Shown in pieces: positions 39,697-59,013 of a stretch of 64,000 bases of DNA. Both the position numbers and the translations under genes were made by a program. Each line of letters opens with the position of its first letter. Position 1 is the first letter of the stretch. A model generated the notes under the pieces. It saw only the letters and a list, made by a program, of their open reading frames with translations. It searched no databases and had not been told where the DNA came from. The stretch spans positions 1,736,001 through 1,800,000 of the forward strand of contig BQFW01000014.1 in NCBI GenBank assembly GCA_020891255.1, read 5' to 3'. This DNA comes from Entomortierella parvispora E1425. Lineage: Eukaryota > Fungi > Mortierellomycota.

Positions 39697-42600
39697 ATGC
39701 CCAAGCATCAATTGTCTCAACAGGACCAGGAACCGCCCCAGGAACCCAAGCAGCAACAACAGCAACAACAGCGGACGCGAAAACGACAGAAACGAGAGCC
39801 TCCGACAACTGGCCAGCAACCATGCTCCCAGCAAGTCGATTCATCTCAACGTGAATCTAATGTAATGCTCGACTCGACTACGTCAGCTCTACGCATGCTG
39901 CGGAATGAACAGTGCCATCTGTGTGCCTCTATGCCATTCTGTTTGCCTATATACTCATGCTCCATCTCTCTGGGCTTCGTTGTACCTGCAGGATTCACTC
40001 GACGCGTCCGAGCTCGCGGCGTCACGACAACACGACAACACGCAAGGAATCTCGTCTAGTACTTCTATTGTCGCGCAGTTCCATGCGGACAAGAAGGCGC
40101 GTCAAGCTCATGAGCTTGACTTGAGACAAAAGGAGTTGGCCTGTATGCAACTTGTCCGCGAACAGCGAAGGGAAAGTATCAAGACGTCGACGCGTGCACT
40201 CTATGACCGATATCAAGCCGTATTCTCTGTAAGTTGGGCCAAGTGTACGATCGTGGCTGATCATGGCTGACAGTGCCCTTTATCCTTTTTTTTTTTTTTT
40301 TTTTTTCTAATTCGTCTACTACAAACACCCATAAACTCATTAATGACTAGAAATGGTGCACGGAAGCTGGATACTCAGACGCCAACGTCATCGAAGAGAA
40401 AGTCTTGCGTTACTGGACTTGTTTAACTGCATCGAAAGAGGACCCAAGCAAGGGTAAGAACCGATAATCACATTTTGTATCTCCATTGTCTACGTATTCT
40501 CATCAGAATGACCTCTATGTCAACTTCCATGTTAACAGGTATCATCATTTTACCTACTGGAATGCGCGGGAAAAGAAAAAGCAATTGAAGACGAGAGAGA
40601 AAGAGGCGACGACAACAGTGACAGTGACAGCGATGGTCATGATAGCGACGACACTGATGATGACAACGATAGTGACAGCGATAGTGTCAATGACGACCTC
40701 GGTGAGAATGTATGTCATTCCGACAGGGGATTACCGGCCAATGCACCGTCTCTCTCAACGGTAAAATTACACGCATCCGCCATCGGAGAACTCTACCGTC
40801 AGCAACGTGTGGACCCAGACAACAAAGTCATGTTCAGGTGTCTCGAGAGAAAGCCGATGGATTACCTGAGGGACCTGATTACGAGTTACGAAAGAAGAGT
40901 GGCGGTCACGAAGAGAGCGACAGATACCGATCAAGGCTCAGCAAACTTTGTCGAGGAGGACCCTTTGGAGAATGTCAAGATGGTAATGGTGCACTTTTGG
41001 CACCATAATATACAGGGCGAACAGAGCAAATGGACACGAGTGATAACTGGTCTTCGCCATCGAGCTGACGCCGCCCTTCGATTTTTTATGATGTGCCGCA
41101 GTGAAACCACACGCAGGATGAGATTGATCGACCTCTTTGGCCAGAATGTTGCACGTCCAGTGCGGAAAGATCGGGAGCAGGAGAGAAAATTCGTCCTTGG
41201 TGTGGTTTTGATGACAAGACAAGGAAAAATGAACAATAATGGCAAGATCCGATATAATGTCGTGGTACGAAACCCAGACGTGGAAGCGTGTCCTGTCGGT
41301 GCTCTAGCCTTTTATCTGCTTGAGTACTGGTTGGTAAGTTTGAACTTTTTGATTATGACGTACATTTTATGAGCTGGGTGAGGCTCTACCCCTTTCTAAT
41401 CTGAATTATCTAGCCTACTTCCTCATCGGCTGCCCCTCCGCCTAGAGTAGAAGATCACGACTGGGTCAACTATCACTTGTTGTCAAAGTCCACCACACGA
41501 ACATCAGAGATACGATATGCCACACAGTACAAGCAGACACGCGAGGTCCAGGATTATCTCAACATTGGTGTCAAAGGCAAAGCAACCCATCTCAGTAGAC
41601 GACTGGGTGCTTTTTTGGCGCGGCTGACTGGAGCCACGCACGAAGATATATCGAAACACGGCGGCTGGGGGACAAACCGACTCATCACCCATTACCTCGA
41701 CGGCGTCGATGCATCTGTGGCGTTGCAAATGGCCGGATTTGAGAATGGCCGTACGGAAAACTTTTGGCTGGAGCGTAATGTCATTCCAGACCTCGAGCTA
41801 CAGCGCATGGTCTTCCCATTCATTGAACGTGCATGCTCAAATCCTGAGGACAAAAAAGCACTACGACCCTTTCTGGATCCAGACCATCGACAACATCATG
41901 CTGGATCGGAGCATATTCTACGGACGTCAAGAGGAAAATATTAAGATCAAAAAAATCAAGAAAAGGGCTGCACGGAAAGTTCTCTCTGATGAGGCAATCT
42001 CGCGTCGACGGCATCTTTGTCTGCTTGCCCACTTGCGGAAAGTCATTCTGCAGGACGCCGCCGTCTTTTTTATTGGCCGAGAACAAATCTTCCCGGCACC
42101 CTATTTTCAAGCGTGAAGTATTCAGGTCTCCGGAATTTTTGGCCTTTAAGAAGTTGATGGCAGAAACGTTAGCCCACACTTCCCTTCGCCCTAGCAACCT
42201 AACGTCCGTGGCACCTGTTATTCAGCGGCAACTGGAGGCCGCCAATGCCCTCATATCACAGCAAACTTCCCGACAACAAACAATGAGCACTGCGATCTCC
42301 AAGATCTCGGATAACATTGAGAGGCTCCAAGTCTACCAGGACCGCCGAGCCTTGCATGCAGAGCAGCGTAATCAGTATGTCCTTGAGGGTGTCGTTCAAG
42401 GTATGGGCAAGGTGAATGACAAGATTGATGCCCTAGTGAAGTCATTAGCGGCCTCTCTGTCAGATGCTGCTGGTCGGATGACCTCTATAACCCAAGAACA
42501 AGAACAAGGAGGCTTGAGTATCACTGAAGGGTCCGTTCTACCTCGTTTGGGTCTGCTGTCAAAAGAGCAGGAAGCCCCAGGTGCCCCGATTCTCAGCCTG

Positions 42601-43200
42601 CAATTATCGAGGGTAGAAGAATCGAGCTTAGTCGCTCCTCCTCCTTCCATTATCCATCCACGTTGTCATGATGACAGCGGCCATTCTGTCAAAACTCAAG
42701 ATAAAATCCAAGCTGTGGCTGTAGTAATTGCGCACTACAGAAGAGAGAGAGGCGAGGTTGACCCTCCTATGCCCAGGCACATGCCTTTGTGCACGTTGGT
42801 CCCTCGGCCAAACACGCTAGAGGGGGTTTGGCAAGAGTGGTTCTATGGTGTCAATGGTAGCCCCTCAGTCGTGACGATGGATTCATGGTATTCAAATCTA
42901 TGGCGCAGTGAAAAGAATTCGGCTAACCCTGATGGGAAAAACGGGTTTGCAGGTCTCTACTTATTCAAGAAGACGATTGTTCAATCGGTCTTGCGCTACA
43001 TCCCGGATAACACACCAATTGACATGGCTATGATTGCACAAGCTCTTCAAGACTTTCAGGACATGCTGAAGGAAGATTGCAACTCTTGCTCAATTGCAGC
43101 ATACTACAAGCTTTTGCCCAAAAAGGTTTCCAAGAGGTTTGGAAGCTCAGAAGAAAAAGAGCAAGGAAAAGGAAAGGTGAAAGCAAAAGAGCAACCATAG
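39697..43200 (+). mobile_element. Crypton (tyrosine recombinase, Ndc10-II-like plus GCR1_C domain) gene with probable frameshifts
   Basis: STVKLHASAIGELYRQQ, MCRSE, QGKMN, CPVGALAFY, THLSRRLGA, KHGGW, HYL, LRKVILQDAA and the GCR1_C-like VWQEWFYG. The frame shifts +1 at homopolymers ~40576, ~41852 and ~42066. Confidence 0.88.
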
Positions 43201-43631
43201 TTTTTTTTTTTTTCCTTTTTTTTTTTTTTTTAATAAAATACACATGCGCGTGCGCACACACGCTCTCACACACGCAGACATGAAAAATACGACAGAGAAA
43301 CAGTGAGTGAGAGGAAAGGGAAGAGAGGGAGGAGAGGGAGGAGGGAGAGGGGAGGGGAGGGAGGGAGGGAGGAGAGAAGTACGTACGGAGATTCGACAGG
43401 CAGTCGTTGATCAAAGACGATGCCAGACCGTCAGGGGGGACTGTGGCTCATCATCTCATAATGGATAAAAAGGGGCGAAAACAAAATTTCATTGGTTTTG
43501 ACGGTCCATTGGCAATGGCCCTGACTATGTTACACACGCCCTCATAGGCCGTCCATAAAAATCCATTCAACAAAAATGAACCGTGAATTTTATGGAAATG
43601 TGCCTTTCGAGAAAAAGTACAAAGAGAAATA

Positions 43632-46600
43632 TTAGATATTCTGTGGCCAATTTTGATTTGATGTGAGCAGCAATGCATTTGAGCTTAGAATACTTACATA
43701 ATTTGAGCTGAGACTCAATTCCTGCATGGCACCTGCTTCGGTGCACGAGGACTGTGATGGTTCCCCAGTCGAAGTCGATCTGGTGTTGGAAGAAAGCGAC
43801 CAGGTGGGTCGCTTTGGGTCAAAGGGTGGCAGCGTGGCTCGGTCCTCTGGGTCCGATGTGACGAGAACATAGCCCGCCAATGCAATGTTGACCGCGGCAT
43901 TTATGTCGCGTCCTCGTTGGGTGTATCCCACCTTGTATGATTCGCAGTCAGGGTTGGTGCATTCGATAGCACCGTGGACACGAACCAATCTCATCTCCCC
44001 ATCCTTCTTTCTCCGTGCTCGCGCTAAACGGACCAACTGGAAACAAAATGGGCAAGTTTGTGACGACTTGTGCTCGGGGGTCTTCGCGACTGGGGTGTAC
44101 CTCATGTGCCTCTCCGGCACCTTATTCCCCCCCATTTTCGAGTGCCCCTTCAATCGTGACCCTACACCCATACCTGCATCACCGTGTAGCATGAGCGGAA
44201 TCACAACTGGTCTCGACTTTGGGCAAGTTTCGAGGTGTTGGAGGGACATCCGTGGCCTCTCCGGGCTTGTTCGATCTAGCGTAGGTTCAGGTCGGTGATG
44301 TATACCACACTTGAGGCAAAATCCGTTGGTCTCAAGTCGGGGCGGGGCCGTTATCAGCAAAGGAGGTATTAGCGGAGACTGCAATGATGATGGTAGCGAG
44401 GATGCATCTGCAGTAACTAGACGGGCGAAGAAAAAAAAATCCAATCAATCTACAGCTGTGTGACATTTGACTAGCCCCTTTTCATTTTCTGTCAACTTAC
44501 TGTTGGCCTGTCGGCTGAACGCTTTCCTCTCCTTCGCCGCAATACGATCATAGGCGCGCCTTAGTCGTAGTTCTTTGTAGTGTCGTAGATTCTGCATCTT
44601 CTTGCTGTTTTCGAATATTCGAAGGTCTTTCCGTACCCTTCGTCGCAACTCCTGGGCCTCCTCAATGGCATGTGAGGTGCTTGCTCGTGTGATGGAAGTA
44701 TCAGCAAGCTTGGTGTATACTTCGGATATCGTCTCCGGCCCGGCCGTCCCTGGGATTGTCGTTTCGGTGACCATCTTTGATCGTACTTGGGACTGTCTAG
44801 TCAACCCTCCATGATGTCGGATATTTGACACTTTGGTCTGATGTGCCGCGGGAAACCTCATCTGCTGAAGAGTAGCAGGAACATAGTCGGGCGGCTCAGG
44901 TTCAATACCCGCCAAGACATCAAACCTGTTCTTCATAGAGATGAGGGTGCTCTCGGGAACGGGGACAGTGTTGAAGAGGATGTGTGCCCCTGGATCCGTG
45001 CCTCCTGGCATCAATACCATCTGTCTCTTGGTGGGATCCAAGTTGTTGTCCTCAATTTCTGCCACCAACCCCTTGATATTTATCGACTCTGCCTTGTCGA
45101 GGCAACCAAGTCGACGGATTGTGGGATTTGAGGAGAATGGGCCGGCAGGAACAGAGGAGGATGAATTGACAGGGGCCGAGGAGGAAGAGCCGGCAGGGAC
45201 CGCGGAAGACGAGCTGGCAGGGGAGCTGGCAGGTGCTGAAGAGGCCGATGACGACGAGGATGTTGTGGAGGAGTAGTATTTGTTATGATCATACTTCTTT
45301 TGTCGTAGGTCTTTGATTTCCGCCCGCATGCGCAATATTTCACGTTGAACATCATGAAAATCATTACGCATTTTCTGCATGTTGGTCTTGAATTGGTCGG
45401 TCACCGATACTCGAGCATCCTGAAAATTGGACTTCAGGGTCTTGAGTTGCTTCTCAAGATTAGCTGCTTTCCTGTTTCGTCCTTGAAGGGCCTTTTCCTT
45501 TACTTTGATAGTATCGGTAAGGTCGTCTGCGATCTTTTTTGCCCGCGGTTTCGTCATTCCCTTCTTTTCGAGTTCCTGCTGCCTCAGTTGGTTGTAAGAA
45601 GGCTCCCGCTGCTTTTTCAATTTCTTCGTCTTAAGCCTCTTTTCCTTGAACAGGTTCTTTGGGGCATCTTTTCGAATCCCATGTCCCATAATTCGTACAG
45701 TGTTTTTGTCGACAAACAGAAGCCTGTCGTGCACAAAATGAAATGTTAAGGTCATGTTCTTGGTAATGTTCGAATACAATGTCGTTCACTCTTGGCACAT
45801 TCCCTCTTACCGATCAGCAAATACAAGCCCGTATTTTTGGCAGATGGAATGGATAACACTCATATCGAAGAAGGCCCCGAATATGACGGGAGCGTTTTTT
45901 ACTCCAAGTGCCTGAGTTGAACACAAGGTTCCTTCGGCATCGAAAACATCAAAATGCTCCTTCTTTGATGAACAAAGCGCCTCCCGAATCCCAGTTGAGC
46001 CCAATGGGAGTGGATGAAGTTTTCCTGCAGACGATATCGGATAGAGCTTCCTCGTAAAATCGCCAAACCCCATCGCATGCAGTAGATGATTCGCCAAGTA
46101 AGCAAACGGCCCTGTCGCTAGGACATGTCGCGGGATGGTGCCTGATGTGGGCTTTGGTGTAAAGGGTCTCAGTGCATTGATGATTTTCACCGCGGCATCG
46201 ACCTCGTTCTCCTTAAACGTGTGGCTGTCGAAGAGATGTTGTCGTACAATGTCCTTTGTGACCAACCCCGACAACTCGCCGATATCAAGTAATTTGCAGA
46301 TCACTGTTTCCAAACCGCGTAGGTGTTTCGAGGTTGGCTCCGCTTTCCGCATTAACTCTAAAACAGGAATCATGTACAAGTCAGACACCACATAGTTTAA
46401 ATACACAATGTCGGGGATGGGTATGACCTTACCTTTTTCAGCGGCCACTGCATCGCAAGGGTCAGAGGTCGCATTCTCGCTATCCCCTTCCACCTCCTCC
46501 TCTTTGGCCTCTTCCTCCAGAGCCTCTCGGAACCCGTCGTCCTCATCCATCCCCTCATCGTCATAGTCGCTATCGTCATCCAACATAACCTCCTGGTGAT

Positions 46601-49058
46601 CGACATCATCAGTAGAGCCCTGAGACTGTGTGCTGGCTATGTTGATGAGACGGAGCAATCTTTGGACACGGTCGACACGCGAATACAATGGTTCATTGTC
46701 GGTCGGATCCGTGAGAATCAAAGTTGATCCAGACCACTCGTTGGTGCATTTGCGAACGGTCCGATCCAACTGATCCAATAAAGAGAAAAGTTTTTTCCTT
46801 CTTCTTGACTCCACCCGATTTCTGGGCTTTCGAGCGGCCTTACTGTGCATTTTTTTTCAGCCCATTTCTTTTTGTTTTGGCGGTATCGCTCTTCGCCAAG
46901 GGGTCGCAAGTGAATTCTCACGAGACATCGAACCACTGCCCTTTTTATATCGCCGTAGATATTTCCGTTCCAGATATTGGCAATGTCGGTTGCGGCCGTT
47001 CTCAGCAAAGTGTTTAGTGTCTGCGATAGTCCTGCTGGACATTCGGCGTTTTCTCGAAAGTTGTCGTCGTCACTAGCTGTCTTTTGGATACACTCGACCA
47101 ACGTTGTCCAATCCGCATGATTGTTCTCCTTCTCCGTCTTTCGCTTTTTCTCTACTGGCTCCGAGTCCCTGTCTGGAGGAAGAAGCTTCTTGGCGAGGAA
47201 ACCTAAGAAGTTCTGGCTGAAAAGATCGCGTAGATCAGGCACCACGTCGGCGTTCTTGTCCTCGGACTTCGTGATTTTCTTCAAGAGGTCGTGTGAGACC
47301 TTGGCAACCCTGACCACGGGGTCTTTCTGAAGTTTAGGATCGCGGATCTGGAAGCCGGCAGGTAGAATGCCTGTGATATCTACATCCTCCCAGTCGTCAC
47401 TCAAACAGCCCCGAAATACCTGTAGTGGAAAAAATGCTCAAAATGTTAGCAAGAGATTGATCGTGATATTGAAAACAAACCCCTTCGTCACAGAGCCTCA
47501 GCGCTTACCTCCACATGTGCCTTCATACATGCCGCCTGCACCTCTTCCATGTGGTCCGATAGAAGCGTCTGACTCTCACCGAGTAGATCGATAATTGTTT
47601 CCTTCGTATCGGCGTCAAACTCTTTGCGTAGGATCCTCTTTATAGGCAGATCACACACACGAATCAGGGTCTCCTTGTCTCGGTCGTCCTCTTTCATTCT
47701 AGGCTCGACCTCGTTGGCACTCCATTTCTCCTTCTTTTCGACAGCGTCACCCCAAAACACCTCGAAGCTGTCTTTTACAAACACCTTGAAGATCTCCAAC
47801 TGTCGATCGTCAAGTTTGTCCACAAAGTCCCTGACTGATATGCTGCCTTGTGGTCTTTTCAGATTTTGCTCCAAATCTCTAATGGCGTCTTGAAGAACAT
47901 TCTGTGGTAATCGGGTTCGAGTAGATTCCTTTTCCAGCAGGCTGGCTCGGGCGGCTTCCATTATATCTGCATCACCGACTTTCTTTTTTCTCTTGCTGGT
48001 CTTCCGGTCATCAATTTTTTTGACGGCCACCTCAACACCACCTTTCACCACTTTCCTCAAGTGCCATGTACTATATGCATGACAAATATGATGTTAGGGG
48101 CCTGGGAATCGTTCAATAGGTTCATTTGCCTATGCCAGTAATACTTACCACTTTCCGAGGAAGCACCTTTCTGCATCCTCAAGATCAAATCCAATCTTGT
48201 CTTTTCTGCAGATTAGGTGTCTTGCTCCAGGACAATACTTTGCAAGTGGTGTTCCTTGCGTCGACGGTAGGCCCGCTGACAGCGCGGTGACTGGTGGTGC
48301 GACAACCGGGGGCACAAATAAGGATAGCGTGGAGACTGATGGAGCGGAGGTTTCTGGTGCAAGGATTGATGGCATAGAGACCGATGGCAGTAGCGATTGG
48401 ATTACCTGCGGCGCAACATTTGAGACAGCCAGTGGGCAGTAGGTCCGCATATGTTCAAAGGAATCAGCGACGTGCACTAGTGCGACGACAGGCGCGAGAA
48501 ATGGCTCTATGACAAGAGTAGAGGCGCGCGTGGAGACGACAACGATTTTGACTTGCAAAAGATGAGCGAGCCTGCGCAAAAGGAGCGGTGAAGGCATAAG
48601 GCTGATAACGTCATCGGCAGCAGAGTCTTTGAAGCCAAAAGCAGTTTGTCGGGTGCGGTTCATAATATCAGCAATGAGGGCGGAGAGGGTCTTATTGCAC
48701 TCATCGATGACGAGCCCAAAACTCTGTTGAAGGACCTTCAGAGTCTTTTGAACATTTTCCGCCCCTGGAAGAGCGTTGCTTTGATCACGTAAGAGAAAGT
48801 CCATACGTTGCTGCAACATCAGTGCTCCCTCTGAGTCTGCTCAGACAATCGGCTATTTGCCTCCTCTACAAAATCATCATCATCGATGAACGAAATTGTC
48901 GTCTGAAAAGGGGAAAATGAGTATTGTGTGGGCTTGTTGACGATAAGAGCAGACAGTCCAAAGTAAGAGGCATCCAGTACCTTTTTCGAAGAGGCGCCAG
49001 AAACATCCAGCAAGTGAATCTCCATGTCCAAGTCCATGGAATCTTGGCTGCTCGACAT
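43632..49058 (-). CDS. Fanzor1 (eukaryotic TnpB-like RuvC nuclease), intron-rich, roughly 1,550-1,650 aa by manual exon joining; 5' end uncertain
   Basis: RuvC-I GTDPG (D ~44995), HGDAGMGVGSRLKGH..GG, RuvC-II PEHKSSQTCPFC (E ~44074), Zn-finger C..C/C...C, and RuvC-III RDINAAVNIA (D ~43906). In-frame GT-AG joins link ORFs 48145-48819, 47488-48060, 46718-47404, 45807-46850, 44445-45779 and 43632-44444. Confidence 0.88.
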
Positions 49059-49104
49059 TGCTTCTTAGCCAATGTCCATAAACTTGGAGATTAGGGACGG
49101 GTAT

Positions 49105-49208
49105 GGAGAGGATGTCAGAATGCAGAGAGGATGTTAGGGGTGTAGAAAGGATGTTAGGGTGCAGAGGGGATGTTAGGGGCGCAGAGAGGATGTTAGAGGA
49201 TGTTGAGG
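49105..49208. repeat. Degenerate ~20-bp tandem repeat (AGAGGATGTTAGGGG core, about 5 copies)
   Basis: Directly visible just upstream of the putative Fanzor start. Confidence 0.75.
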
Positions 49209-49449
49209 TGGGCGAAGAGAGGAAAGAGACGCGCGACTGCGGTTCGTGGCGTTTACCTGCTGGCCAATCATCTACTCGCATCCTTCACGTACTTCGCGTT
49301 GTCACGTGGATTTAACCGAGACTCGGCAGAGAGATGGTGATGGTCTTCCAGGGAACATCACCATTCAATTGAATCTTCGGAAGCTACCCTCTCTTGCTGT
49401 TCACAATCGGAAAATCGGCGATTTATCTGACCCGCCACCATGGCAGCAC

Positions 49450-50170
49450 AAATGCATGTGAGATTCCTACCATCAAATTTGTGCGCGCATTCGAAGTCCG
49501 ACTCATCTACCTGGTGTGCGCTGGCCGGCCGATGCCAAACCATATGTCAAACCGTCCAAGCACTCCTCAGCTAATCTCTTCCAGATCTTGGAGGAGGACA
49601 ACTATGAATAAGCTATTGAAAGAGCACGGCACATGGAGCGGAAGCGTGGAGTAAGTCTACAGTTTTGTCCTCCTGTTCGCTTATTTGACTTACCCCGAAA
49701 CTCGTGCCTCAGGAAACAGCGCGGAGGTTCAGGATCGACAATCCAGCGAGCAACAGCATCACGGAAAGCGGCAGCGGTTCAGAGGATTTAACAGACAGTT
49801 GAGGATAGACAGATACAACCTCCAGGACCAATTACAAAGATTTTATTTACGCAGAGACCTGCCCAATATGCTCGATTGCCTGATCCAGAGAGATCCCAAC
49901 AACCGCCACTTTCGTTCAAGCACAGCACTTGGTTCACAAATAGCGCAGGAAGATAGACGGCGATGGACTCAAGAAGAAACAGATGGAGCTCAATTCAAAC
50001 GGATTCGATTAAAGCCAGAGGACTTATCTCTTCTTGTGGATGTGGAGAGCCTACGGATGGCTCTTAAGCTCCTACAGCTTGGCTTGAATGGCCTTGTCCA
50101 TCTACAACAGGCCGCCCTCCCTCGCCCGCGAGAGAATATGGAGGATATCAATCATGTAGATTCTGATTGA
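49450..50170 (+). pseudogene. Unknown spliced accessory ORF with an in-frame stop in an upstream exon
   Basis: 161-aa ORF 49685-50170, preceded by exon ILEEDNYE*AIERARHMERKRG that ends at GTAAGT. Its stop lies 5 nt from the reconstituted Tc1 stop codon. Confidence 0.4.
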
Positions 50171-50216
50171 CACGTTTATTGCTGGACCAAGTATAAATAA
50201 AGTCTATGCTCCAATC

Positions 50217-50896
50217 CAGCCTCGACAACTGGGCCACTTTTTCGAAAAAAGTGACCATCCTTCGTTGCACAGAAACGGTGGCTTCACTCAATTTTTTGGT
50301 GGCCACCACTTGGTCGCCACTCAAAATAAAGGAGTGGTGCAAAGGTGTCAACAAACCTGCAGCTCCACTCTTTTTCACTCTTTTTCACTCTTTTTCACTC
50401 TTTTTCACTCTTTTTGAGTGATTCCTGCAGGAAAATGGTGATTTGTCCCAAAAAGGATCGCATCCACCAAAAAAAAAGTGGTCGCCAGTAGTCCCACCAA
50501 AAAAAAGTGGACCTCACTTGGGAAAGGAGTGGTCGGAACATTTTGTGCGACCCAAAAGCAGAGACAAAAAGCGCGTGTGCGGTGCGGTCCAGCGTCTCTC
50601 CTCTCGAGCAGCATGCGCATGCCCATACCATGGGCCACACTAGCTTCAAGCGTGCCGTGGTCTATCTGTTCACGCCTGTTTGTCCACGGATGTTTAATTG
50701 CTTGTCTGCCCTTTTTTTTTTTTTTGTTTCCCGTCTTTTTCCAATCCTGGCCCAAGTCGACATTCTCTCCCAGTGAAATCGTATCATGGACGCGCAAGAG
50801 CAAGCCCTACCTCCTCAACAACCCGAGGCTGATCCTGAACTCGTTCCCCAACCTCCACAAAACTTATGGCACCCACTGGTAGCGGGACTTGAAGAC
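50217..50896 (+). repeat. Left TIR of hAT (680 bp)
   Basis: Reverse complement of 54912-55592 apart from one base in a poly(T) run; contains (CACTCTTTTT)x5 and recurrent AGTGGYC motifs. Confidence 0.95.
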
Positions 50897-51018
50897 TATT
50901 TTTTATGCATCGCTGTGCAGTACATATTCAACTAATGTTAAGGAAGGACTTCTCGTCATTTTTCTCCTAATGTTTACTCAGCTAAGTCTTATATCTTGAG
51001 AGCTCTCACCCAATGTTG

Positions 51019-54000
51019 CTATCCAAATTTTTGGAATATGTCGATATCGTCATCGCCATCATTATAGTAATCGTCCAGTTTTATCTTGTAGCCGGTGTCC
51101 CAGGTAGCCAGCAAAACCAATGCCTTAAGCTTGAGGATACCAAGACGCGTTCTTTTTGCTGTAAGAACGCATCCAGAGACGCTAAAGAGCCTTTCACTTG
51201 CCGCTGAGGAGGCTTGTATACTAAAGAAGATGACAACAAACTGGGACAGGTACTTGAACATGCCTCCATGCACTGCCCACCACTCATGAGGTTTGTTGTA
51301 ATCTTTCAACGGTTCCGATTGGGCAAGTTCGATATAACTCTGCAGCTCCATCGACAGGAGCGTGGTGAGATCCTCAGTAGACTTATCCCCAAAGTCGATT
51401 CCTGTGCGCAGTGGACTTTCAGGATCAGCCGTTGCAAGAATAAGGTCCTCTGCAAGCTGTTTCAGTCTTTCTCCTTCCAATCCAGTGAAAAATCCATCAT
51501 TCTTAATATTGGTAGGGTGGAGGTATGTGGCAATGAGGACTTCATCGGCCATATCAGCTGTGGAGAAGAGGCCTGCGAGCTGCCTTACAAACTTTTCTTG
51601 GAACCGCTCCACAATAGGAATCGTCAACAGAGGGTCGGAACTCAGGACCTTGCGGATCTTGGGGTATAAGCCTGTGATGACAGGGTCGTTGGAGGACATT
51701 GCTACTGTCAATTCTGCGGTGGGTCGCAGGACAGTAAGAAGCTCCTTGAGAACATCGAACTCTTCGTTACTCAGAAGCTGACTACCATATTCTCGCCAAA
51801 ATGTCTTCTCCATTTGCGTGGCAGTAGGCATCTGCGCTCGCGCCTTGACCAGGTCTGTTGCTTCACGTAGCTCCAGAAGGCGCTCTATCATCATGAATCT
51901 GCTGTTCCATCGCGTAACAGTGAATGTGAGAGCCTTTAGTTCCTTTTGTTTTAAGTCGGATCGCGCTTTGCATAGGAGAGTTGATCCTCCGCTTGATAGG
52001 AACGCCTTGTTGTGTTCTTCAGCCTTGCGGACAATAGTCTTTATATCACCCGTTGCTTCGATGATGTTGCGGATAAACAGTTGAAGTTTATGACAGGCAC
52101 AGGGAAACCACGGACCAAAAGTTTCGTCATCGTTGATTAAAAAGTCGAGTTGTTGCTTTCATGACATTGGCGGAGTCGGTAGTACTGCAAAAGGCCTTGC
52201 CTTTTAGCCCCCAAAATAAAAGGGTTCGCTCTAGAAGTTGTGATTTGTATTAGATCAAGCTGCAGCCAGGGCCAAAGACGACGGCAAGCAGAGCTACCAT
52301 CCACACTTACCTACTATATCCTGGATGTCAACAGCCGTCCCAGAACCAAAGTATTCCTCAAAACCAATCGCCAGAGATTTGGGTTTGTAGGTCTTTTTCT
52401 CGATGTAATGGAACGTGATCCCGATGAATTTCCGGCCAAATCTCTTCCAACCGTCGTAGGTAAAGCAGCCTCGAACGACTCCTGCAGCAAATATTTTGTC
52501 CAGTCGTGCGCGAGCATTTCCGTAAAGCTTGAATACACACTTTCCGACGGTTTGAGGAGAAGGCGACGGGTATGAAAATCCGAGAATTCTAGCGACGCCC
52601 GAGGCATACGGGCCAGTAACCACTGAGAACGGGAGTCTCTGTTGAATCGCGCTGTGAGTAGTGAATAGCTGTATAGCTTCTTGAGTACTCGGCAATATCT
52701 TGGTCAGCTGCGAGGACTTTGGCATTGTCTGGTCATAGAATACTGAATACCCTTCCGCGTTTCCTGCTTCCACATCTACATGAATTGACGTTTGATAGGT
52801 TAAAAATGTGATAGTGTACACCTATGAGTAATTCATTGAGATAGATTACCTTCGAATCCTTGATTTTTTCGGAATGTTGTCAATGCTGAGAGTATTTCTG
52901 GATGGTTCCTTGTAACATGTGCCGTACGCATGCCTGTACCTTGAGATCCTGGCTTATGGTAGTGACATCTGCGGTTCTCACTAGTCTTGACTCGGCAAAA
53001 GAACCATGCCTTTGGAATGTCAGAGACATAAGGAAACTTTTTCCCTGTGTATGGATCAACGGTTGGGGCGTTGATGGTGGGCTGGAGATCAACCTGGTTG
53101 ATTGTGGCAGGATTTGTTGTTGACACCTTCTCAAAGAAATGACGGTGCCATGCCCCTGGAATCGTAAGATCGATCTGCCTTATGGGTATATGTGCGAGCA
53201 TAGACTTGGCCTCCTTGCACACACTATATGGTGGGAGCTGGCCCACTTTCAGTGTTTTCTCGTAGTCTGCTATAGTCATGGATATACCTCCGCCATTTGG
53301 TGGAGGTTCGGAAAAGGCTGGGGTTGACCGAAGGAGTACAGGTGACGATGTACTATCGCCCGTTTGTTCCTGAGTGTACATTTCCACTTCGGACATCATT
53401 GATGGCTCTCGTGAAATGGACGCCACCGATGAAGTTCTACTCAGATTCCTTTGTCGAGCATTCCAAAGTTCCATTGGAGTTGTCTCAACTTCAGCCTCTC
53501 GGGCAGTTGGTGATACGGCTCGGGACGAAGCCCCAAGGTGTATATCTGCAATTGCCCTCGGTGCACCTGGAGTTGGACCACGGATTTGATCCGCAGGACG
53601 TTTCTTTGGAATAGTTGGAGGTACTCTGTAGTGCTCATAGGGCATTCCGGGAGGAGGGCGATACTGTGGATGAATGGGAAGAGTAGAATACTGCATAGTA
53701 TGGTGTGATTCGGTGTGATGCATCCCTGGGTAAGGACTGTATGGTACATCTGAATATGGATGGAAGTGGCCTGGTGGGTGGTAGACAGGTTGATTTGGGT
53801 CTTGAGAGTGATATTGAGGAAATTGATACTGTCCAGGGATATGGTATGCATGGTGAAGCTCATGAGGTTGGGAGTATGGGTACTGAGGACCTCGAGGTTG
53901 GGATGGAACTAGTGGGTTATATTGATGGTGGGAAGGTAGATAGGGATGAGGACGAGTCTGTGGTGCTTGAACAGCCTCATTATCGGTGTGGGAAGGAGGA

Positions 54001-54311
54001 CGAGGATGAGGATGAGGATGAAGGCGAGGAGGAGGATGAGTCCGGGGTGCTTGGATGGTCTCATTATCGATGTTGGAAGGAGGATGAGGACGAGGACGAG
54101 GACCAGTCTGTGGCTCTTGGACATCTTCAGTATCGATGCTGGAAGGAGGATAAGGACGGAGACGTGGACCAGTCTGTGGCTCTTGGGTAGCCTCAGTTTC
54201 GATGTTGGAAGGAGGGTGAGGAGGAGGATGAGGAGGAGGAGGATCGGTCTGTACTGTCTGGACAGCATCATCATCATCGTTGAAATGATGACTATATGGG
54301 TCGTAGTCCAT
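51019..54311 (-). CDS. hAT transposase (Pro/His repeats, BED finger, DDE, dimerisation domain); one probable +1 frameshift near 52140
   Basis: BED finger WFFC..C..H..H, TYDGW, TTDSANVM, CACH, TRWNS, WWAVH and SSAASERLFS; two GT-AG introns. Confidence 0.9.
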
Positions 54312-54572
54312 CGTGAGAGAAATGGTAGTACTATAGATGTTATAGAGAAAAGAAAAAGGTAGAAAATAAGGAGGAAAAAAAAGGAAAGAGGAAGAGGAAA
54401 GGAAAATTCAAGACAAGAGCATTGGAAGAAGTCAAGAGTTCCCACAGCATGGAGGAAACGGGAAGGTTCACAGTGCTTGCGATAAGCTTGGGCGATTTTC
54501 TTAATCTGGGGCATGCATGCACACCATGGCCACAAAAACATCGAGGAAAAAATGTGAAGGGCTTCACATGGT

Positions 54573-55022
54573 TTATTGATCAGGTAAGAGATGTGTTTGA
54601 TCCAAAGCTGGGTCACCTTGAGCGATTCGGAAGGCAACAACTGCATCGATCAAATCTCTGTGGGTGTTCCTGATGTGACGCAGTCGAATGTTCAAGCCAA
54701 AATCAGAGCGAATTCTGTAAGGACAGTTCTGAACTTGACATTTAGAGAAGCGAGGACCAGTGTCTCCAGTGGCCCTGTCCTCCAATGCAAAAAAATTGTT
54801 GTCAATCGATTGATTCCTAGCAACTCTGATAGGAACTGCGGCGAGGGCAAGCCTGTTTGCAGCGATGCATGCTTGAACTGGAGGGAGCTCACCAATTGGC
54901 AATTGAAAGTGGTCTTCAAGTCCCGCTACCAGTGGGTGCCATAAGTTTTGTGGAGGTTGGGGAACGAGTTCAGGATCAGCCTCGGGTTGTTGAGGAGGTA
55001 GGGCTTGCTCTTGCGCGTCCAT
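54573..55022 (-). CDS. Stand-alone BED-type zinc-finger ORF inside the hAT element, starting within the right TIR
   Basis: 149 aa; KCQVQNCPY...RLRHIRNTHRDLIDAVVAFRIAQG resembles the transposase BED region. Confidence 0.65.
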   Translation of the reverse strand: MDAQEQALPPQQPEADPELVPQPPQNLWHPLVAGLEDHFQLPIGELPPVQACIAANRLALAAVPIRVARNQSIDNNFFALEDRATGDTGPRFSKCQVQNCPYRIRSDFGLNIRLRHIRNTHRDLIDAVVAFRIAQGDPALDQTHLLPDQ

Positions 55023-55592
55023 GATACGATTTCACTGGGAGAGAATGTCGACTTGGGCCAGGATTGGAAAAAGACGGGAAACAAAAAAAAAAAAAAAGGG
55101 CAGACAAGCAATTAAACATCCGTGGACAAACAGGCGTGAACAGATAGACCACGGCACGCTTGAAGCTAGTGTGGCCCATGGTATGGGCATGCGCATGCTG
55201 CTCGAGAGGAGAGACGCTGGACCGCACCGCACACGCGCTTTTTGTCTCTGCTTTTGGGTCGCACAAAATGTTCCGACCACTCCTTTCCCAAGTGAGGTCC
55301 ACTTTTTTTTGGTGGGACTACTGGCGACCACTTTTTTTTTGGTGGATGCGATCCTTTTTGGGACAAATCACCATTTTCCTGCAGGAATCACTCAAAAAGA
55401 GTGAAAAAGAGTGAAAAAGAGTGAAAAAGAGTGAAAAAGAGTGGAGCTGCAGGTTTGTTGACACCTTTGCACCACTCCTTTATTTTGAGTGGCGACCAAG
55501 TGGTGGCCACCAAAAAATTGAGTGAAGCCACCGTTTCTGTGCAACGAAGGATGGTCACTTTTTTCGAAAAAGTGGCCCAGTTGTCGAGGCTG
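54912..55592 (-). repeat. Right TIR of hAT (681 bp)
   Basis: Reverse complement of 50217-50896. Confidence 0.95.
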
Positions 55593-56486
55593 CTCCAATC
55601 CAAAAAAATTCTCCTTCAGGCCATCGGCGTCATAGCCACAGCCACAGTGCGAAAACAAATTGATGGCTATAGGCCCTGTTTTGCACATGCCCTGAATGCA
55701 AGGTCTAGAACGATTTTCGGTGCCTTGGCATAAACAATATTTGCATTCTTTTCAATGAAGCGTTTGGTTAGAGAGAAACCAGCCTTAATTGGGTTCAATC
55801 GGGGAGAATAGGGAGGAAGAAAAACGAGAAATGCCCTCCTACTCTCAATTGCTTCCCGGAATTCGCTATACATATGAATGCGAGCATTGTCTATAGCTAC
55901 AAAGGAGTTTGGTAGAGGGTAAGGTTGAAGGTGGGGTAGAATCTTGTCGACAAATGCATCATGAAACGACTCCCGTGTGAATGTTCCAGTAGTGAATTCC
56001 CAGGCAAGAGAACCTCTGTAGTTAAAAGCAGCCAGTGCAGAGACAGGAACCCCCCGTGAGAAAGGAACGTTTATAATAGCTACCGTATTGACTGTGGAAT
56101 AGGCGTACGATCTCAAAGCCGCTCGTCCGTCCTTGCTCGTCTCATCAATAAACACAAGCTGCTCTGGAAAGAGGTACAGTTCCTTCATGTTTTGTCGAAA
56201 CCACTCGATTTCCTGTGGATTTGACTCGCGTGCTCGCTTCTGCAACTTTTTTCTTGTGAGATTCAGATTATTTCGTAAAGCACGGCAAATTGTGGAGACG
56301 GATGTATTCTGCAGATCTGGAAATTCACGCCAAAATTCCTCTTGCAGCTCCTCAAGGAAGAAGCAAGGGTGGTTTTTAGTATATGACTCGGCGAAAGTCA
56401 ACACATCTGGTGGCCATCGAGAAGAGCTTTTGCGCGTATGTTCAATGTGAACGTTCCCTGTGTTGTTGAAATGACCTGTCCTTGTC

Positions 56487-56521
<35 letters not shown>

Positions 56522-59013
56522 ATAAGAAAAAAAACGCGAAGGCGACGCGACTCAATAACGCGGACTTACGATACCATTTCGTGATCGTATGTTGCGAAAT
56601 GCCTAGCAACACTGCCACAGCAGATCTGGGCAGGCCCATTATATTGTAGAGCTTAATGGCGCACCAGCGAATATCGTCTGAAAAGGTCATTGGGATGTGG
56701 GGTGATGTTTGAGAAGCAACACGCACGTTGCAGTTTAAATACTGCGGTTTGAAAGCAGTTTCTCATCTTTTTACCCTTTCTGGATGCGTAAAAAGTTCGC
56801 AATTATACTACAAATAAACGGATGCCAGGTAAAATACGAACATACCCATGCTTTTTCGAACCACACGCAGAAACGTCTGATATTTTATTTATCCTGCGCC
56901 CATGTTCACGTGCCCGTCTTGTCACGTGCATTTAGCCCACCAAATTTCTAAGTTAACCGGAGTGACTGTTCATTGATATATTTTAATCATGATATCTGCA
57001 AGTTTATTTTTTTTTAGGTGCAAAGCATATTAAAAATGGGTTTGATCATCCTCATTATTTTGTAGAGAGTTAGCTTTGGCTGCAATGGTGTGGTACGAAC
57101 AATAAAAGATATATTGCTGGGTTGGAGGCGAAGACTCAATGAAAGAGGAGGGGGGCGCGCAATTGTGTGGCGTCTCGGCCAGGAGTCCACAGGCTGTGTC
57201 CGCCCCGAGTCGAAGCTAAAAAAGATATGAATGCCTGGAGATAACCTCTTTTCTGAATGAACAGCTCTCATTTTTTTTGCGCGGCGTTCGAGTTGGATGA
57301 ATTATCTACAATAGTTGCACCGGATCAGCCTATCTCCGGTACTCGTGGATGGGTGGGGATGTGAGCATCTGTTCCTAATTCGGCAGATTTTCTCCCTGCG
57401 GACAACATTTATTTTGAAATTTAGGAGGAAAAGGCAAGGGAGCAAGAGCCCGACCCTCAAAAAGAGGGCGAGCATTCTTTAGCCTCGAGGGTCAGAGAGG
57501 CGAGCTTCAACAATATTACAATATTACTGAGGACCTAAAACCGTACACGGGTGGTCGTGGAAAGTTTGGAAACCAACCTTCTCGCTTATTCTCTTTTTGG
57601 AGAAAGGTTTCTGCTTGCCTACTGCTGTTGGTTCACTGGGAGGGCATTGTGTTTTTTATCTTTTCTCATCGATGTAGTTCAGAGGTAGCAGCTGTCGTAA
57701 GAGGCTTACGGAGCAGAGACATGAGGGTTTCCACGAAAGAACAAGAGCGAGAGAGACTTGACATCTATTTTGGTCACTGGTGGGCATGACCGTCTCAGCT
57801 GGGGCGATGACGGATGATTTTGCGGCGTCAGTTTCTTGCTTTGTGCCGAAAGCATAGCTTGGAGTGTCATCTGGACCTTTCTTCTTTTTCTTTGGCAAGG
57901 GGTCTCAAAATAGCAAACCGCCGTGGTCAGCCACAAGACCATTCCTTAGTTCTAAAAAAGAACACACGGTCCTGGCCACAGGGCAGTCCGGTTGCATCTC
58001 TCATTCTTCATCCTTTGCCACTGATTCACTGCTGGGAAAAAAAAGGAGGGGAGGGGCACGGAAGAATCTTGGCCCAGAGTTTCTGTGAGTTTTTGTCAGG
58101 CAGGGGTTAAAAATATTTTGGGCAGTCGACTCACAAGCTAACCTCTTTGTGCAACAACAGAGAGCAGAAAGAGTATGGCTCGTCAACAACTGTCCAGATG
58201 GCTATCAAAATATTGGAGCTCTCTCAGGAAAATAAGCACGTTTTGCTGTTAATGTCGCGGCACAAGCTCCAGGTCTGGCCCTGGCCCTGGTCGCTTGGGT
58301 CAGGTCAGGTCAGGTCAAAGCTGTTGAGCGGAAGGAGGTTTGCACTGCTTTGACAGTGGTTCTCCAACGTGCGCAACGCGGCTTTTGTGTGCGTGTGTTT
58401 ATTTATTTTTTGTCGCAGCAAGGGGTTTCCTAATTCCCGCACAATCTGTTGAGAGTCAGGACGAATCACCTGGACGCTTTTACGAGCAGGGGCAGTCCCT
58501 CACCCTTTTTCTGAACGATAACGGCCTGATGATGACAGATGATGGACCTCATTGTGACGGACAAGACTGTCGTTCCTCCACAAACAATTGCAATTGCAAT
58601 CGCTGTCGTCCCTCCTTCTCTGTCTCCTGAGTGTCATTGCAATTCAATCGTCCCCATGCCATCGATCATCAGGCAAACCAATCCAAACAAACAAACCAAC
58701 CAAAAAGAAAAAAAATTATTGTCCACCAACCTTCCTCTATATCTAAATTTACAATTTCCCGTCCAACAGACCTCGCACACACATCATATTCAACCGAACA
58801 AAACTCTCTTTTTTTACTTCCAGTCCATTCCGCTCCTTCTTCCATGTTTCCGGTTGCTATATAAGCGGTGACCGTTTGATTCTTTTCTCTCGTCTTTCTT
58901 TTCCCTTTCTCCCTTGTCTCTCGCGCCCCCTGTCTTCCTCTTTTTACCCTCCACCCTTCTACTCCTTACGTCCTCACATCCACCTTCCTACATCCATACC
59001 CACACTTCCTACG

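Follow-up and report, generated by a model that had tools for sequence, protein, structure and literature searches.

A probable long-form Fanzor1 gene in a decaying Tc1/mariner-like element of Entomortierella parvispora

We analysed a 64,000-nucleotide stretch of Entomortierella parvispora DNA (contig BQFW01000014.1), called the window here, and found that it probably carries one decaying copy of a transposon-borne, long-form Fanzor1 gene, in which a ~980-aa extension is spliced to a canonical core. The last ~670 aa are predicted to make up this core, with WED, REC, a split RuvC whose Glu is relocated, and a TNB finger of the CCCC type; a conserved phase-2 intron would join the ~980 aa to its front, and the gene appears to be a passenger in a ~8.1-kb Tc1/mariner-like element. 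We infer RNA guidance, DNA cleavage and the role of the extension as follows. By analogy with characterised Fanzor1, the core would bind an omega-RNA that stems from the 3' end of the Fanzor gene together with the right end of the element, and would cut matching DNA adjoining a short motif. As a working guess, the extension would serve as an accessory or regulatory module that binds nucleic acid or a partner, and would not be a second enzyme. To our knowledge, Fanzors are the sole known eukaryotic RNA-guided DNA nucleases. The literature that we searched contained no paper naming Fanzor together with Mortierella-type fungi, and the family members we saw were all annotated merely as hypothetical proteins.

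Table 1. Positions in the window of the gene, its parts and the elements around it.
Feature	Position	Strand	Evidence or comment
Long-form Fanzor1 gene	43632..49058	-	Split between two public gene models, EMPS_10540 and EMPS_10539
Exons per uninterrupted-paralog model, first four of seven	49058-48981, 48905-48149, 48070-47509, 47419-46432	-	
Exons per uninterrupted-paralog model, last three	46356-45811, 45723-44501, 44416-about 43698	-	3' terminal exon uncertain
Frame break 1	48832..48833	-	CTCAG here vs CTCAAG in paralogs; one base lost
Frame break 2	46850..46857	-	A8 here vs A9 in paralogs
Conserved ~180-aa domain, model aa ~800-982	45811..46356	-	Directly ahead of core; most widely conserved part of extension
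Phase-2 intron joining extension (…VFADR) to first WED strand of core (LLFVDKNTVRIMG)	45724..45810	-	Splice signals
RuvC-I Asp, GTDPG motif	44994..44996	-	Invariant in family alignment A1
Relocated catalytic Glu, PEHKSS motif	44073..44075	-	Aligned to Glu of DEYKTSS in SpuFz1
TNB zinc finger, CPFC … CTNPDC	43944..44054	-	Pfam Cas12f1-like_TNB and alignment to SpuFz1 zinc finger
RuvC-III Asp, RGRDINAAVNI motif	43905..43907	-	SpuFz1 comparison and family alignment
3' end of Fanzor ORF plus 33 nt to element end	43599..43860	-	Element boundary from copy alignment and ends
Composite Tc1/mariner-like element	43599..57027	-	~8.06-8.1 kb without nested hAT; transposase gene and long Fanzor1 gene
Transposase HTH part	56442..56726	-	Pfam HTH_23, E 5.8e-8
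Transposase DDE_3 (Tc1/IS630-type) catalytic part	55667..56404	-	Pfam DDE_3, E 1.7e-20
Nested hAT element, between transposase gene and Fanzor gene	50217..55592	.	Inverted arms, ORF, 8-bp duplication

A first-pass annotation, made from the sequence alone, had described a TnpB/Fanzor motif layout in the C-terminal region. All of the quoted motifs were present in the window ORFs (GGTDPG, RRAYDRIAAKERK, HGDAGMGVGSRLKGH, PEHKSSQTCPFC, ECTNPDC and RGRDINAAVNI), with the Asp codon at 44996-44994, where that annotation had placed it. The same annotation had called the protein a Fanzor1 with a complete D-E-D triad and a zinc finger, a call that both fold and alignment uphold. The triad and the four cysteines of the CCCC finger are kept across the family, while no conservation is seen at the canonical RuvC-II position, G(D/A/T)(A/S)G. 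The Glu of PEHKSS is conserved wherever the region is annotated, and its counterpart in SpuFz1 is, by tag offset, E541, a residue that coordinates Mg2+ (PMC10432273).

The closest folds to the C-terminal ~670 aa were the solved Fanzor1 structures. Foldseek with the core model (mean pLDDT 64 only) placed PpFz, SpuFz and GtFz on top, followed by Cas12 proteins. The structure search that had been proposed for this region thus matched the Fanzor1 RuvC-TNB: VIA aligned residues 427-843 of P0154 with residues 357-633 of SpuFz at Z 14.4. By sequence, SpuFz1 was the only PDB match for the core, a PDB profile search with the core alignment returning coiled-coil matches only, plus SpuFz1 at the zinc finger. 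The proposed HMM search gave a mixed answer. Pfam Cas12f1-like_TNB hit the zinc finger (E 1.2e-4), but its 22.6 bits lie under the 26.3 cut-off, and no TnpB/Fanzor model of Pfam or NCBIfam passed its curated threshold (NCBIfam guided_TnpB, 11.8 bits vs 100). The putative Fanzor1 membership of the core rests on its modelled fold and its motifs.

Fz1 proteins are usually 600-700 aa long (PMC11423790), and SpuFz1 has 638 aa (PMC10432273). The long-form gene is about 2.5x the usual size (1,626 aa in the paralog EMPS_03070, 1,000-1,900 aa in relatives). Because this size falls outside the usual range, we class the gene as a variant Fanzor1. The suggestion of a new Fanzor subtype with added domains is thus supported, the gene representing a distinct long form.

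Seven minus-strand ORFs lie between 49058 and 43632, and joining them at six GT-AG sites gave an open frame of 1,648 aa. The six joins and a size of ~1,550-1,650 aa had been proposed earlier; each holds in part. We told true introns from frameshifts by alignment with two paralogous copies, L003 and L004. Four of the joins (48148-48071, 47508-47420, 45810-45724 and 44500-44417) are introns, three of which contain indels among the paralogs that are not multiples of three. The other two (near 48832 and in the A-run 46850-46857) are one-base deletions across which both paralogs read without interruption, and the six-join model was dropped there. The first break, which may be an assembly error in a short A-run, terminates the first ORF at TGA 48821-48819; the second divides the gene into its two public models. 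The two deletions thus explain the public annotation of the window copy as two genes. The public model of EMPS_03070 is a single uninterrupted protein, from which three further in-frame introns are removed (48980-48906, 46431-46357 and one near the 3' end). The proposed size holds for the family, EMPS_03070 being annotated at 1,626 aa, but not for the window copy as assembled.

Both frame breaks might be homopolymer assembly errors, the window copy being really an intact gene of ~1,670 codons like its paralog. We regard this as possible but rather unlikely. Both breaks do lie in A-runs (AA to A; A9 to A8), the 2-4 Mb contigs suggest a long-read assembly, and the frame is open once both bases are restored, a T-to-A change near 48820 then turning Leu into Met and not into a stop. 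Every read contig over 46849 carries the extra base, but the contigs over the second break have the L003/L004 alleles at all 22 differing places; they therefore come from the paralogs and are uninformative on the window copy. Other marks of decay also speak against an intact copy: the nested hAT, the changed termini of the element and, in the transposase, a Glu that has become Lys.

We then considered whether extension and core form one gene. The junction intron has a GTAAGA donor, a CTTAAC branch site and a CAG acceptor, and contains a 7-nt indel among the paralogs. It occupies the identical position in L002, L006, L007 and L008; the window gene and L002 have intron positions in common at an exon protein identity of 31-53%. 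There is no in-frame ATG for the core in L002, L003 or L004, and many predicted proteins of 1,000-1,900 aa align over the junction without interruption. Between the window copy and L003, dN/dS was 0.25 overall, 0.25 in the N-terminal part, 0.11 in the conserved domain and 0.33 in the core. The conserved intron position, a core without a start codon of its own and the dN/dS of 0.25 argue, from comparative sequence, that the ~980-aa extension belongs to the Fanzor gene.

Improbably, the locus could hold two separate genes, for a ~980-aa protein and an ordinary ~670-aa Fanzor1, or intron retention could give the N-terminal protein alone. A TAA stop does follow the intron donor directly in every copy examined, and many predicted proteins stop exactly at the junction. 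Only 87-94 nt separate the two parts, however, with consensus donor, branch site and acceptor, and relatives at 32-38% identity keep the intron phase. An ATG at 45757, inside the intron of the window copy, was considered as a separate core start and rejected, since L003 and L004 have it in another frame and L002 lacks it. L001 is a core-only copy that lacks the intron. It was likewise rejected as a sign of separate genes, since it encodes the residues either side of the join continuously (MFADFSLLYMD), as a spliced message would, and it thereby favours the join.

Reads bear on the gene in the paralogous copies. Two introns, 48148-48071 and 47508-47420, are precisely missing, with GT..AG ends, from contigs of run X1 that bear the L003/L004 alleles; the shorter side of these joints measures 23-26 letters, under the tool's 31-letter bridging rule. 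The tool guessed 'DNA?' as the kind of this run; its joints, together with a gap in read depth at the intron, led us to treat it as RNA. In run X2, made from the same sample, the intron is covered. One read contig with paralog alleles, carrying the extra base, is unspliced through 46702-46979, and a search of RNA runs with the whole gene as query listed nothing. The X1 joints suggest that the family is expressed, two N-terminal introns being spliced in paralog transcripts; we infer expression of a single 1,626-aa product.

The extension that precedes the core consists of an alpha/beta domain, a basic NLS-like KRKKK patch, two mainly helical domains, an acidic linker and the ~180-aa domain. It occurs in proteins of 1,000-1,900 aa across Mortierellomycota and in one Mucorales protein. 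A search returned 236 cluster representatives at E<=0.001, most of them aligned to query residues ~140-319, which marks the ~180-aa domain as the most widely conserved part; the profile of this domain had no Pfam and no PDB sequence match. That several hundred N-terminal residues resemble no recognised family had already been noticed, and by sequence this is so: when every ORF piece was scanned, together with long relatives, Pfam and NCBIfam gave no named family for the N-terminal part, only coiled-coil noise, and in the window gene pieces no XPG or PIN domain. A HAD hydrolase identity for the protein, obtained at 0.88-0.90 in an atlas feature search, was rejected as chance because few features were shared.

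Modelling and Foldseek of the N-terminal half, which had also been advised, were informative on folding but yielded only a weak OTU-like match. The N-terminal model has a mean pLDDT of 73.5, with 542 of 800 residues at >=70, and predicts a folded extension. The OTU-like matches concern the first domain (Foldseek E about 1; VIA Z 3-4.2 over ~100 aa; TM 0.44 to the OTU cluster of the Atlas). The OTU catalytic dyad is not conserved: its His is not kept, and its Cys is limited to the closest paralogs. A separate, true OTU domain does occur in one relative, P0021 (Pfam E 8e-5, DGNCFFRA).

On another reading, the extension would be a second WED-REC module, TnpB/Fanzor-like but degenerate, which would make the protein a fused pseudo-dimer or give it an enlarged, Cas12-like REC lobe. 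A structure search independent of Foldseek, run over 48,161 chains, placed residues 16-178 of Cas12m2 (Z 7.2) and residues 2-168 of GtFz (Z 7.1, 160 aligned) among its top rows, with REC parts of Cas12f and Cas12a further down. A best Z of 7-8 is nevertheless typical of models without a true match, helical bundles score high by chance, and no similarity emerged when the N-terminal and core alignments were compared profile to profile. We thus hold a second module to be improbable. More readily, if still tentatively, we picture the extension as a functional module that makes a multi-domain effector of a minimal Fanzor1. One option is an added lobe for nucleic-acid binding, like the Cas12 REC expansion, another an OTU-derived platform for binding a partner or ubiquitin. 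If so, the Mortierellomycota/Mucorales clade would have properties missing from Fanzors of 600-700 aa, for example guides of greater length, different requirements on the target or a connection to chromatin.

The long form shares with Fanzor1 (SpuFz1, PpFz1, GtFz1; PDB 8GKH, 9CEU-9CF1, 9CER) the RuvC-TNB fold at the Z given above, the WED-REC-WED-RuvC order, the D/E/D triad with its Glu moved beside the CCCC finger, eukaryotic introns and a place at the right end of a DNA transposon. It differs from them in the ~980 folded, conserved residues before the first WED strand, which in SpuFz1 begins near residue 20, in a long coiled-coil REC with a Ser-rich insert, and in a CxxC…HH insert in RuvC. 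Like Cas12 effectors, it is a TnpB-derived RuvC nuclease grown well past 1,000 aa. In Cas12, however, the growth is a REC insertion inside WED, used with CRISPR arrays, whereas here the addition is N-terminal to the entire core and the gene is transposon-borne. Fanzors are described as compact; a selected, conserved clade at 2-3x their usual size would be a natural case of a TnpB-type nuclease gaining accessory domains inside eukaryotes. Its members form a concrete test set in which the full-length protein can be compared with the bare core to learn what such domains contribute.

The element that carries the gene is present in at least three sequenced copies (window, L003 and L004). The window matches the other two at 96% over 43599-50218 and at 90% over 55591-57037 (90-96% for the element), with unrelated flanks. 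EMPS_07617 is a fourth protein, 98% identical, and L005 is 100% identical to window 33451-56586. The ends of L003 and L004 read TA|TTGTGC...GGCACAA|TA, a TA duplication with a short inverted repeat of ~9-10 nt that runs TTGTGC(C)TTT… inward from either end; the window copy differs in its terminal 2-3 bases. The right end lies 33 nt past the Fanzor stop codon, which fits the placement of an omega-RNA, and the interval given in Table 1 would, by analogy with other Fanzors, be a candidate site for its scaffold. No omega-RNA was found at the 3' end, where the RNA fold z-score is an unremarkable -1.98; the protein tail is disordered in the model. Crypton-like genes downstream (40809-43200) were rejected as partners since they lie outside the repeated unit.

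The nested hAT, absent from L003 and L004, has inverted arms at 50217-50902 and 54906-55592 (98-99% complementary), a Dimer_Tnp_hAT ORF at 51019-51894 and a flanking 8-bp duplication, CTCCAATC, at 50209-50216 and 55593-55600. At the third catalytic position, the window transposase reads LNPIK, its Glu changed to Lys; L003 and L004 retain LNPIE but are split over three frames. The transposase gene is defective in all three copies. With the nested hAT, the Glu-to-Lys change and the two one-base breaks in the Fanzor frame, the window copy as assembled is decaying. It is very unlikely that Fanzor has here been domesticated into a host gene, a role raised in the first-pass annotation: although purifying selection, conserved introns and the position of L008, L007 and L001 next to host genes with no transposase nearby would suit it, there are at least four near-identical copies at unrelated places, the element has sharp ends, with TA duplications in L003 and L004, and copies are frame-broken, the window copy being also interrupted by another transposon.

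Fanzor1 genes in Mariner/Tc1 elements have been described before, according to the citation of Bao and Jurka 2013 in PMC10530073. Like those carriers, the element examined here combines an HTH and DDE_3 transposase, a TA duplication and short inverted ends with a passenger Fanzor. Unlike them, it spans ~8.1 kb, its transposase is defective in every copy examined, and its 1,626-aa passenger is much larger than the transposase.

We chained seven minus-strand ORFs across window 49058-43632, which left six joins, and splicing them at GT-AG sites gave an open frame of 1,648 aa for the window copy. The motifs listed by the first-pass annotation were all found (GGTDPG, RRAYDRIAAKERK, HGDAGMGVGSRLKGH, PEHKSSQTCPFC, ECTNPDC and RGRDINAAVNI). 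Alignment with L003 and L004, two other E. parvispora copies of the Fanzor-carrying element, amended this first model. Instead of the six introns first proposed, four joins are introns and two are one-base deletions relative to the paralogs. A GTAAG donor is present in all four introns and a CTAAC-like branch site in three. Within three of the introns the paralogs differ by indels of 1, 8 and 7 nt; none of these lengths is divisible by three, and coding sequence would not tolerate such changes. The public model of the L003 gene, EMPS_03070, is concordant and additionally splices out three in-frame introns that are invisible to any ORF map. Read with this exon model, the coding sequence of L003 has an open frame of 1,625 codons.

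Coordinates of the gene model, public annotation and neighboring elements (window positions unless a locus is named)
Feature	Position	Strand	Size or context	Basis
Intron	48148-48071	-		Paralog alignment
Intron	47508-47420	-		Paralog alignment
Intron (junction)	45810-45724	-		Paralog alignment
Intron	44500-44417	-		Paralog alignment
One-base deletion in window copy	near 48832	-		Paralogs uninterrupted there
One-base deletion in window copy	A-run 46850-46857	-		Paralogs uninterrupted there
EMPS_10540	48375-46718		496 aa	Public annotation
EMPS_10539	46586-43451		931 aa	Public annotation
Nested hAT element	50217-55592		Between transposase and Fanzor genes, window copy
Crypton-like unit	40809-43200	+	Tail to tail with Fanzor gene; outside repeated Fanzor element
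Core-only Fanzor copy EMPS_08825	L001:8001-10130 (E. parvispora BQFW01000012.1)		Between photolyase and topoisomerase II genes

Both frame breaks lie within A-runs, so an assembly error is a possible source. Read contigs over the second break carry the paralog alleles at 22 of 22 differing places and therefore cannot decide between a real deletion and an error. The window copy is probably decaying, and the domesticated role once proposed for it was not borne out. Read run X1 spoke to splicing: its contigs omit exactly 78 and 89 bases, with GT..AG ends, at both predicted N-terminal introns. A tool guess labels this run 'DNA?'; we infer that it is RNA because it skips introns while in X2, a second run on that sample, read depth over the intron is full. 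The intron-skipping contigs bear L003/L004 alleles, so the spliced transcripts are those of the paralogs and not of the window copy. Thus, paralog transcripts are spliced at the two N-terminal introns.

The C-terminal core was compared with known families by profile and by structure. The last ORF matched the Pfam family Cas12f1-like_TNB below threshold (E 1.2e-4, 22.6 bits; cut-off 26.3); for the upstream ORFs Pfam had no meaningful match, and an NCBIfam scan of the ORFs did no better. The sole PDB sequence match of the last exon was SpuFz1, over DEYKTSSVCPRC…VHG..CTNPNC…RD. EMPS_10539 was modelled with AlphaFold using 24 family sequences; the mean pLDDT was 64, and the core blocks were confident. 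Foldseek ranked PpFz, SpuFz and GtFz on top, followed by Cas12 proteins and Fanzor2, and the VIA structure comparison aligned model residues 427-843 with SpuFz 357-633 (Z 14.4). The RuvC relationship was recovered by fold, the profile match remaining sub-threshold, and the Fanzor1 identity holds at the family level. So does the D-E-D triad: every relative with that region annotated keeps both Asp residues, the relocated Glu and the cysteines. A conserved G-x-C-x-x-C-x-x-H-H (NGFCLKCGIHH, window 44295-44327, minus strand), followed by HLETC, lies in an insert that separates the RuvC helices from the RuvC-II strand. The motif may be a second metal-binding knuckle within RuvC; its position is roughly that of the FRI insertion of PpFz1.

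The core model runs from a beta hairpin through long REC helices and beta strands to RuvC, an order that places the first WED strand directly after the junction intron. In SpuFz1, WED residues begin near position 20 of 638 (PMC10432273), and everything before aa ~983 of the long form is thus additional. Fz1 proteins are mostly 600-700 aa (PMC11423790), whereas the long form has 1,626 aa in EMPS_03070, a single annotated gene; for the family, the unusual size first noted is therefore confirmed.

In the public annotation the window gene is divided at the second frame break into EMPS_10540 and EMPS_10539. Extension and core meet at the junction intron (45810-45724), which connects …VFADR with LLFVDKNTVRIMG. 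L002, a soil-metagenome relative with 31-53% identity over the exons, has an intron in the same codon phase at the junction, of unrelated sequence, and lacks an ATG in frame with the core part. An R-then-stop donor occurs at the identical place in Actinomortierella (L006), Mortierella alpina (L007) and a diverged paralog (L008). The ATG that lies inside the window's junction intron is not in frame in L003 or L004. Colinear alignment over the join is seen for predicted proteins of 1,000-1,900 aa in many Mortierellomycota. Between the window copy and L003, dN/dS was 0.25 overall, with 0.25 in the N-terminal 780 codons, 0.11 in the domain preceding the core and 0.33 in the core. In the core-only copy L001, the junction intron is absent and MFADFSLLYMD reads through the join. 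This copy begins MFAD…, precisely where the two parts of the long form join, and its public model of 494 aa ends ahead of the RuvC-II and zinc-finger region; the copy may be either a retrocopy truncated at its 5' end or a short form of older origin.

The N-terminal part, described at first as matching no recognised family, indeed matched none in Pfam and NCBIfam scans at the family level. A model of EMPS_03070 residues 1-800 (mean pLDDT 73.5) had confident blocks of alpha/beta structure (25-190), of helices (265-395) and of helices with small sheets (420-730), with disordered linkers at 195-260 and 732-800. Block 25-190 weakly matched OTU domains in three libraries, and its putative OTU Cys and His are not conserved across the family. 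A separate canonical OTU protease domain (residues 282-400, DGNCFFRA … HYYS) is present in a relative from Gryganskiella cystojenkinii (KAG0050570.1, 1,902 aa), where it follows the first family domain and precedes the helical part. Against REC parts of Cas12m2, GtFz, Cas12f and Cas12a the helical blocks scored Z about 6-7, within the noise range, and profile-profile comparison of extension and core alignments found no similarity. The most conserved part of the extension is a ~180-aa domain preceding the core (236 cluster representatives, E<=0.001), whose profile had no match in Pfam or PDB. AlphaFold DB clusters matching residues ~200-740 were uncharacterised proteins throughout. One sequence match came from Halteromyces radiatus (Mucorales).

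A protein search found relatives in E. parvispora and on a soil-metagenome contig. The E. parvispora locus L005 (BQFW01000014.1) shows 100% identity to window 33451-56586 and is therefore the source. Identity of L003 and L004 to the window is 96% over 43599-50218 and 90% over 55591-57037; EMPS_07617 is a fourth near-identical protein. The unit common to the copies spans window 57027 to 43599. Its ends in L003 and L004 read TA|TTGTGC…GCACAA|TA, and it begins with HTH_23 and DDE_3 ORFs (Pfam) encoding a transposase that is defective in all three copies. Fanzor1 within Mariner/Tc1 elements is already known (PMC10530073); we found no paper pairing Fanzor with Mortierella-type fungi. The element ends 33 nt 3' of the Fanzor stop codon, where a Fanzor right end and omega-RNA scaffold would be expected; no RNA was detected. 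Beyond 43599 each copy has a different sequence, which is thus flank, not scaffold. Divergence between copies is about 5-7% upstream and about 1% in the core. Against L003 (43599-50200) it drops steadily 3'-ward: segments of 300 nt hold 14-21 differences upstream of the gene and 3-6 in the core. This gradient suggests that the nuclease and right-end part is under stronger constraint or undergoes gene conversion.

The hAT element nested in the window copy has unusually long inverted arms (~686 nt, matching 98-99%), which include 10-nt tandem repeats (CACTCTTTTT), and an 8-bp duplication, CTCCAATC. Two 39-nt tandem units rich in GGATGTTAG lie at window 49099-49176, 40 nt 5' of the Fanzor start codon. 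In Actinomortierella ambigua, the long Fanzor gene is followed closely, on the other strand, by a DDE_3-like ORF (L006:12997-13554) that is 29% identical to the transposase of the window, so the transposase link recurs in another arrangement. In the Crypton-like unit of the window, two ORFs match NDC10_II (tyrosine-recombinase-like) and a 403-aa ORF carries a GCR1_C DNA-binding domain.
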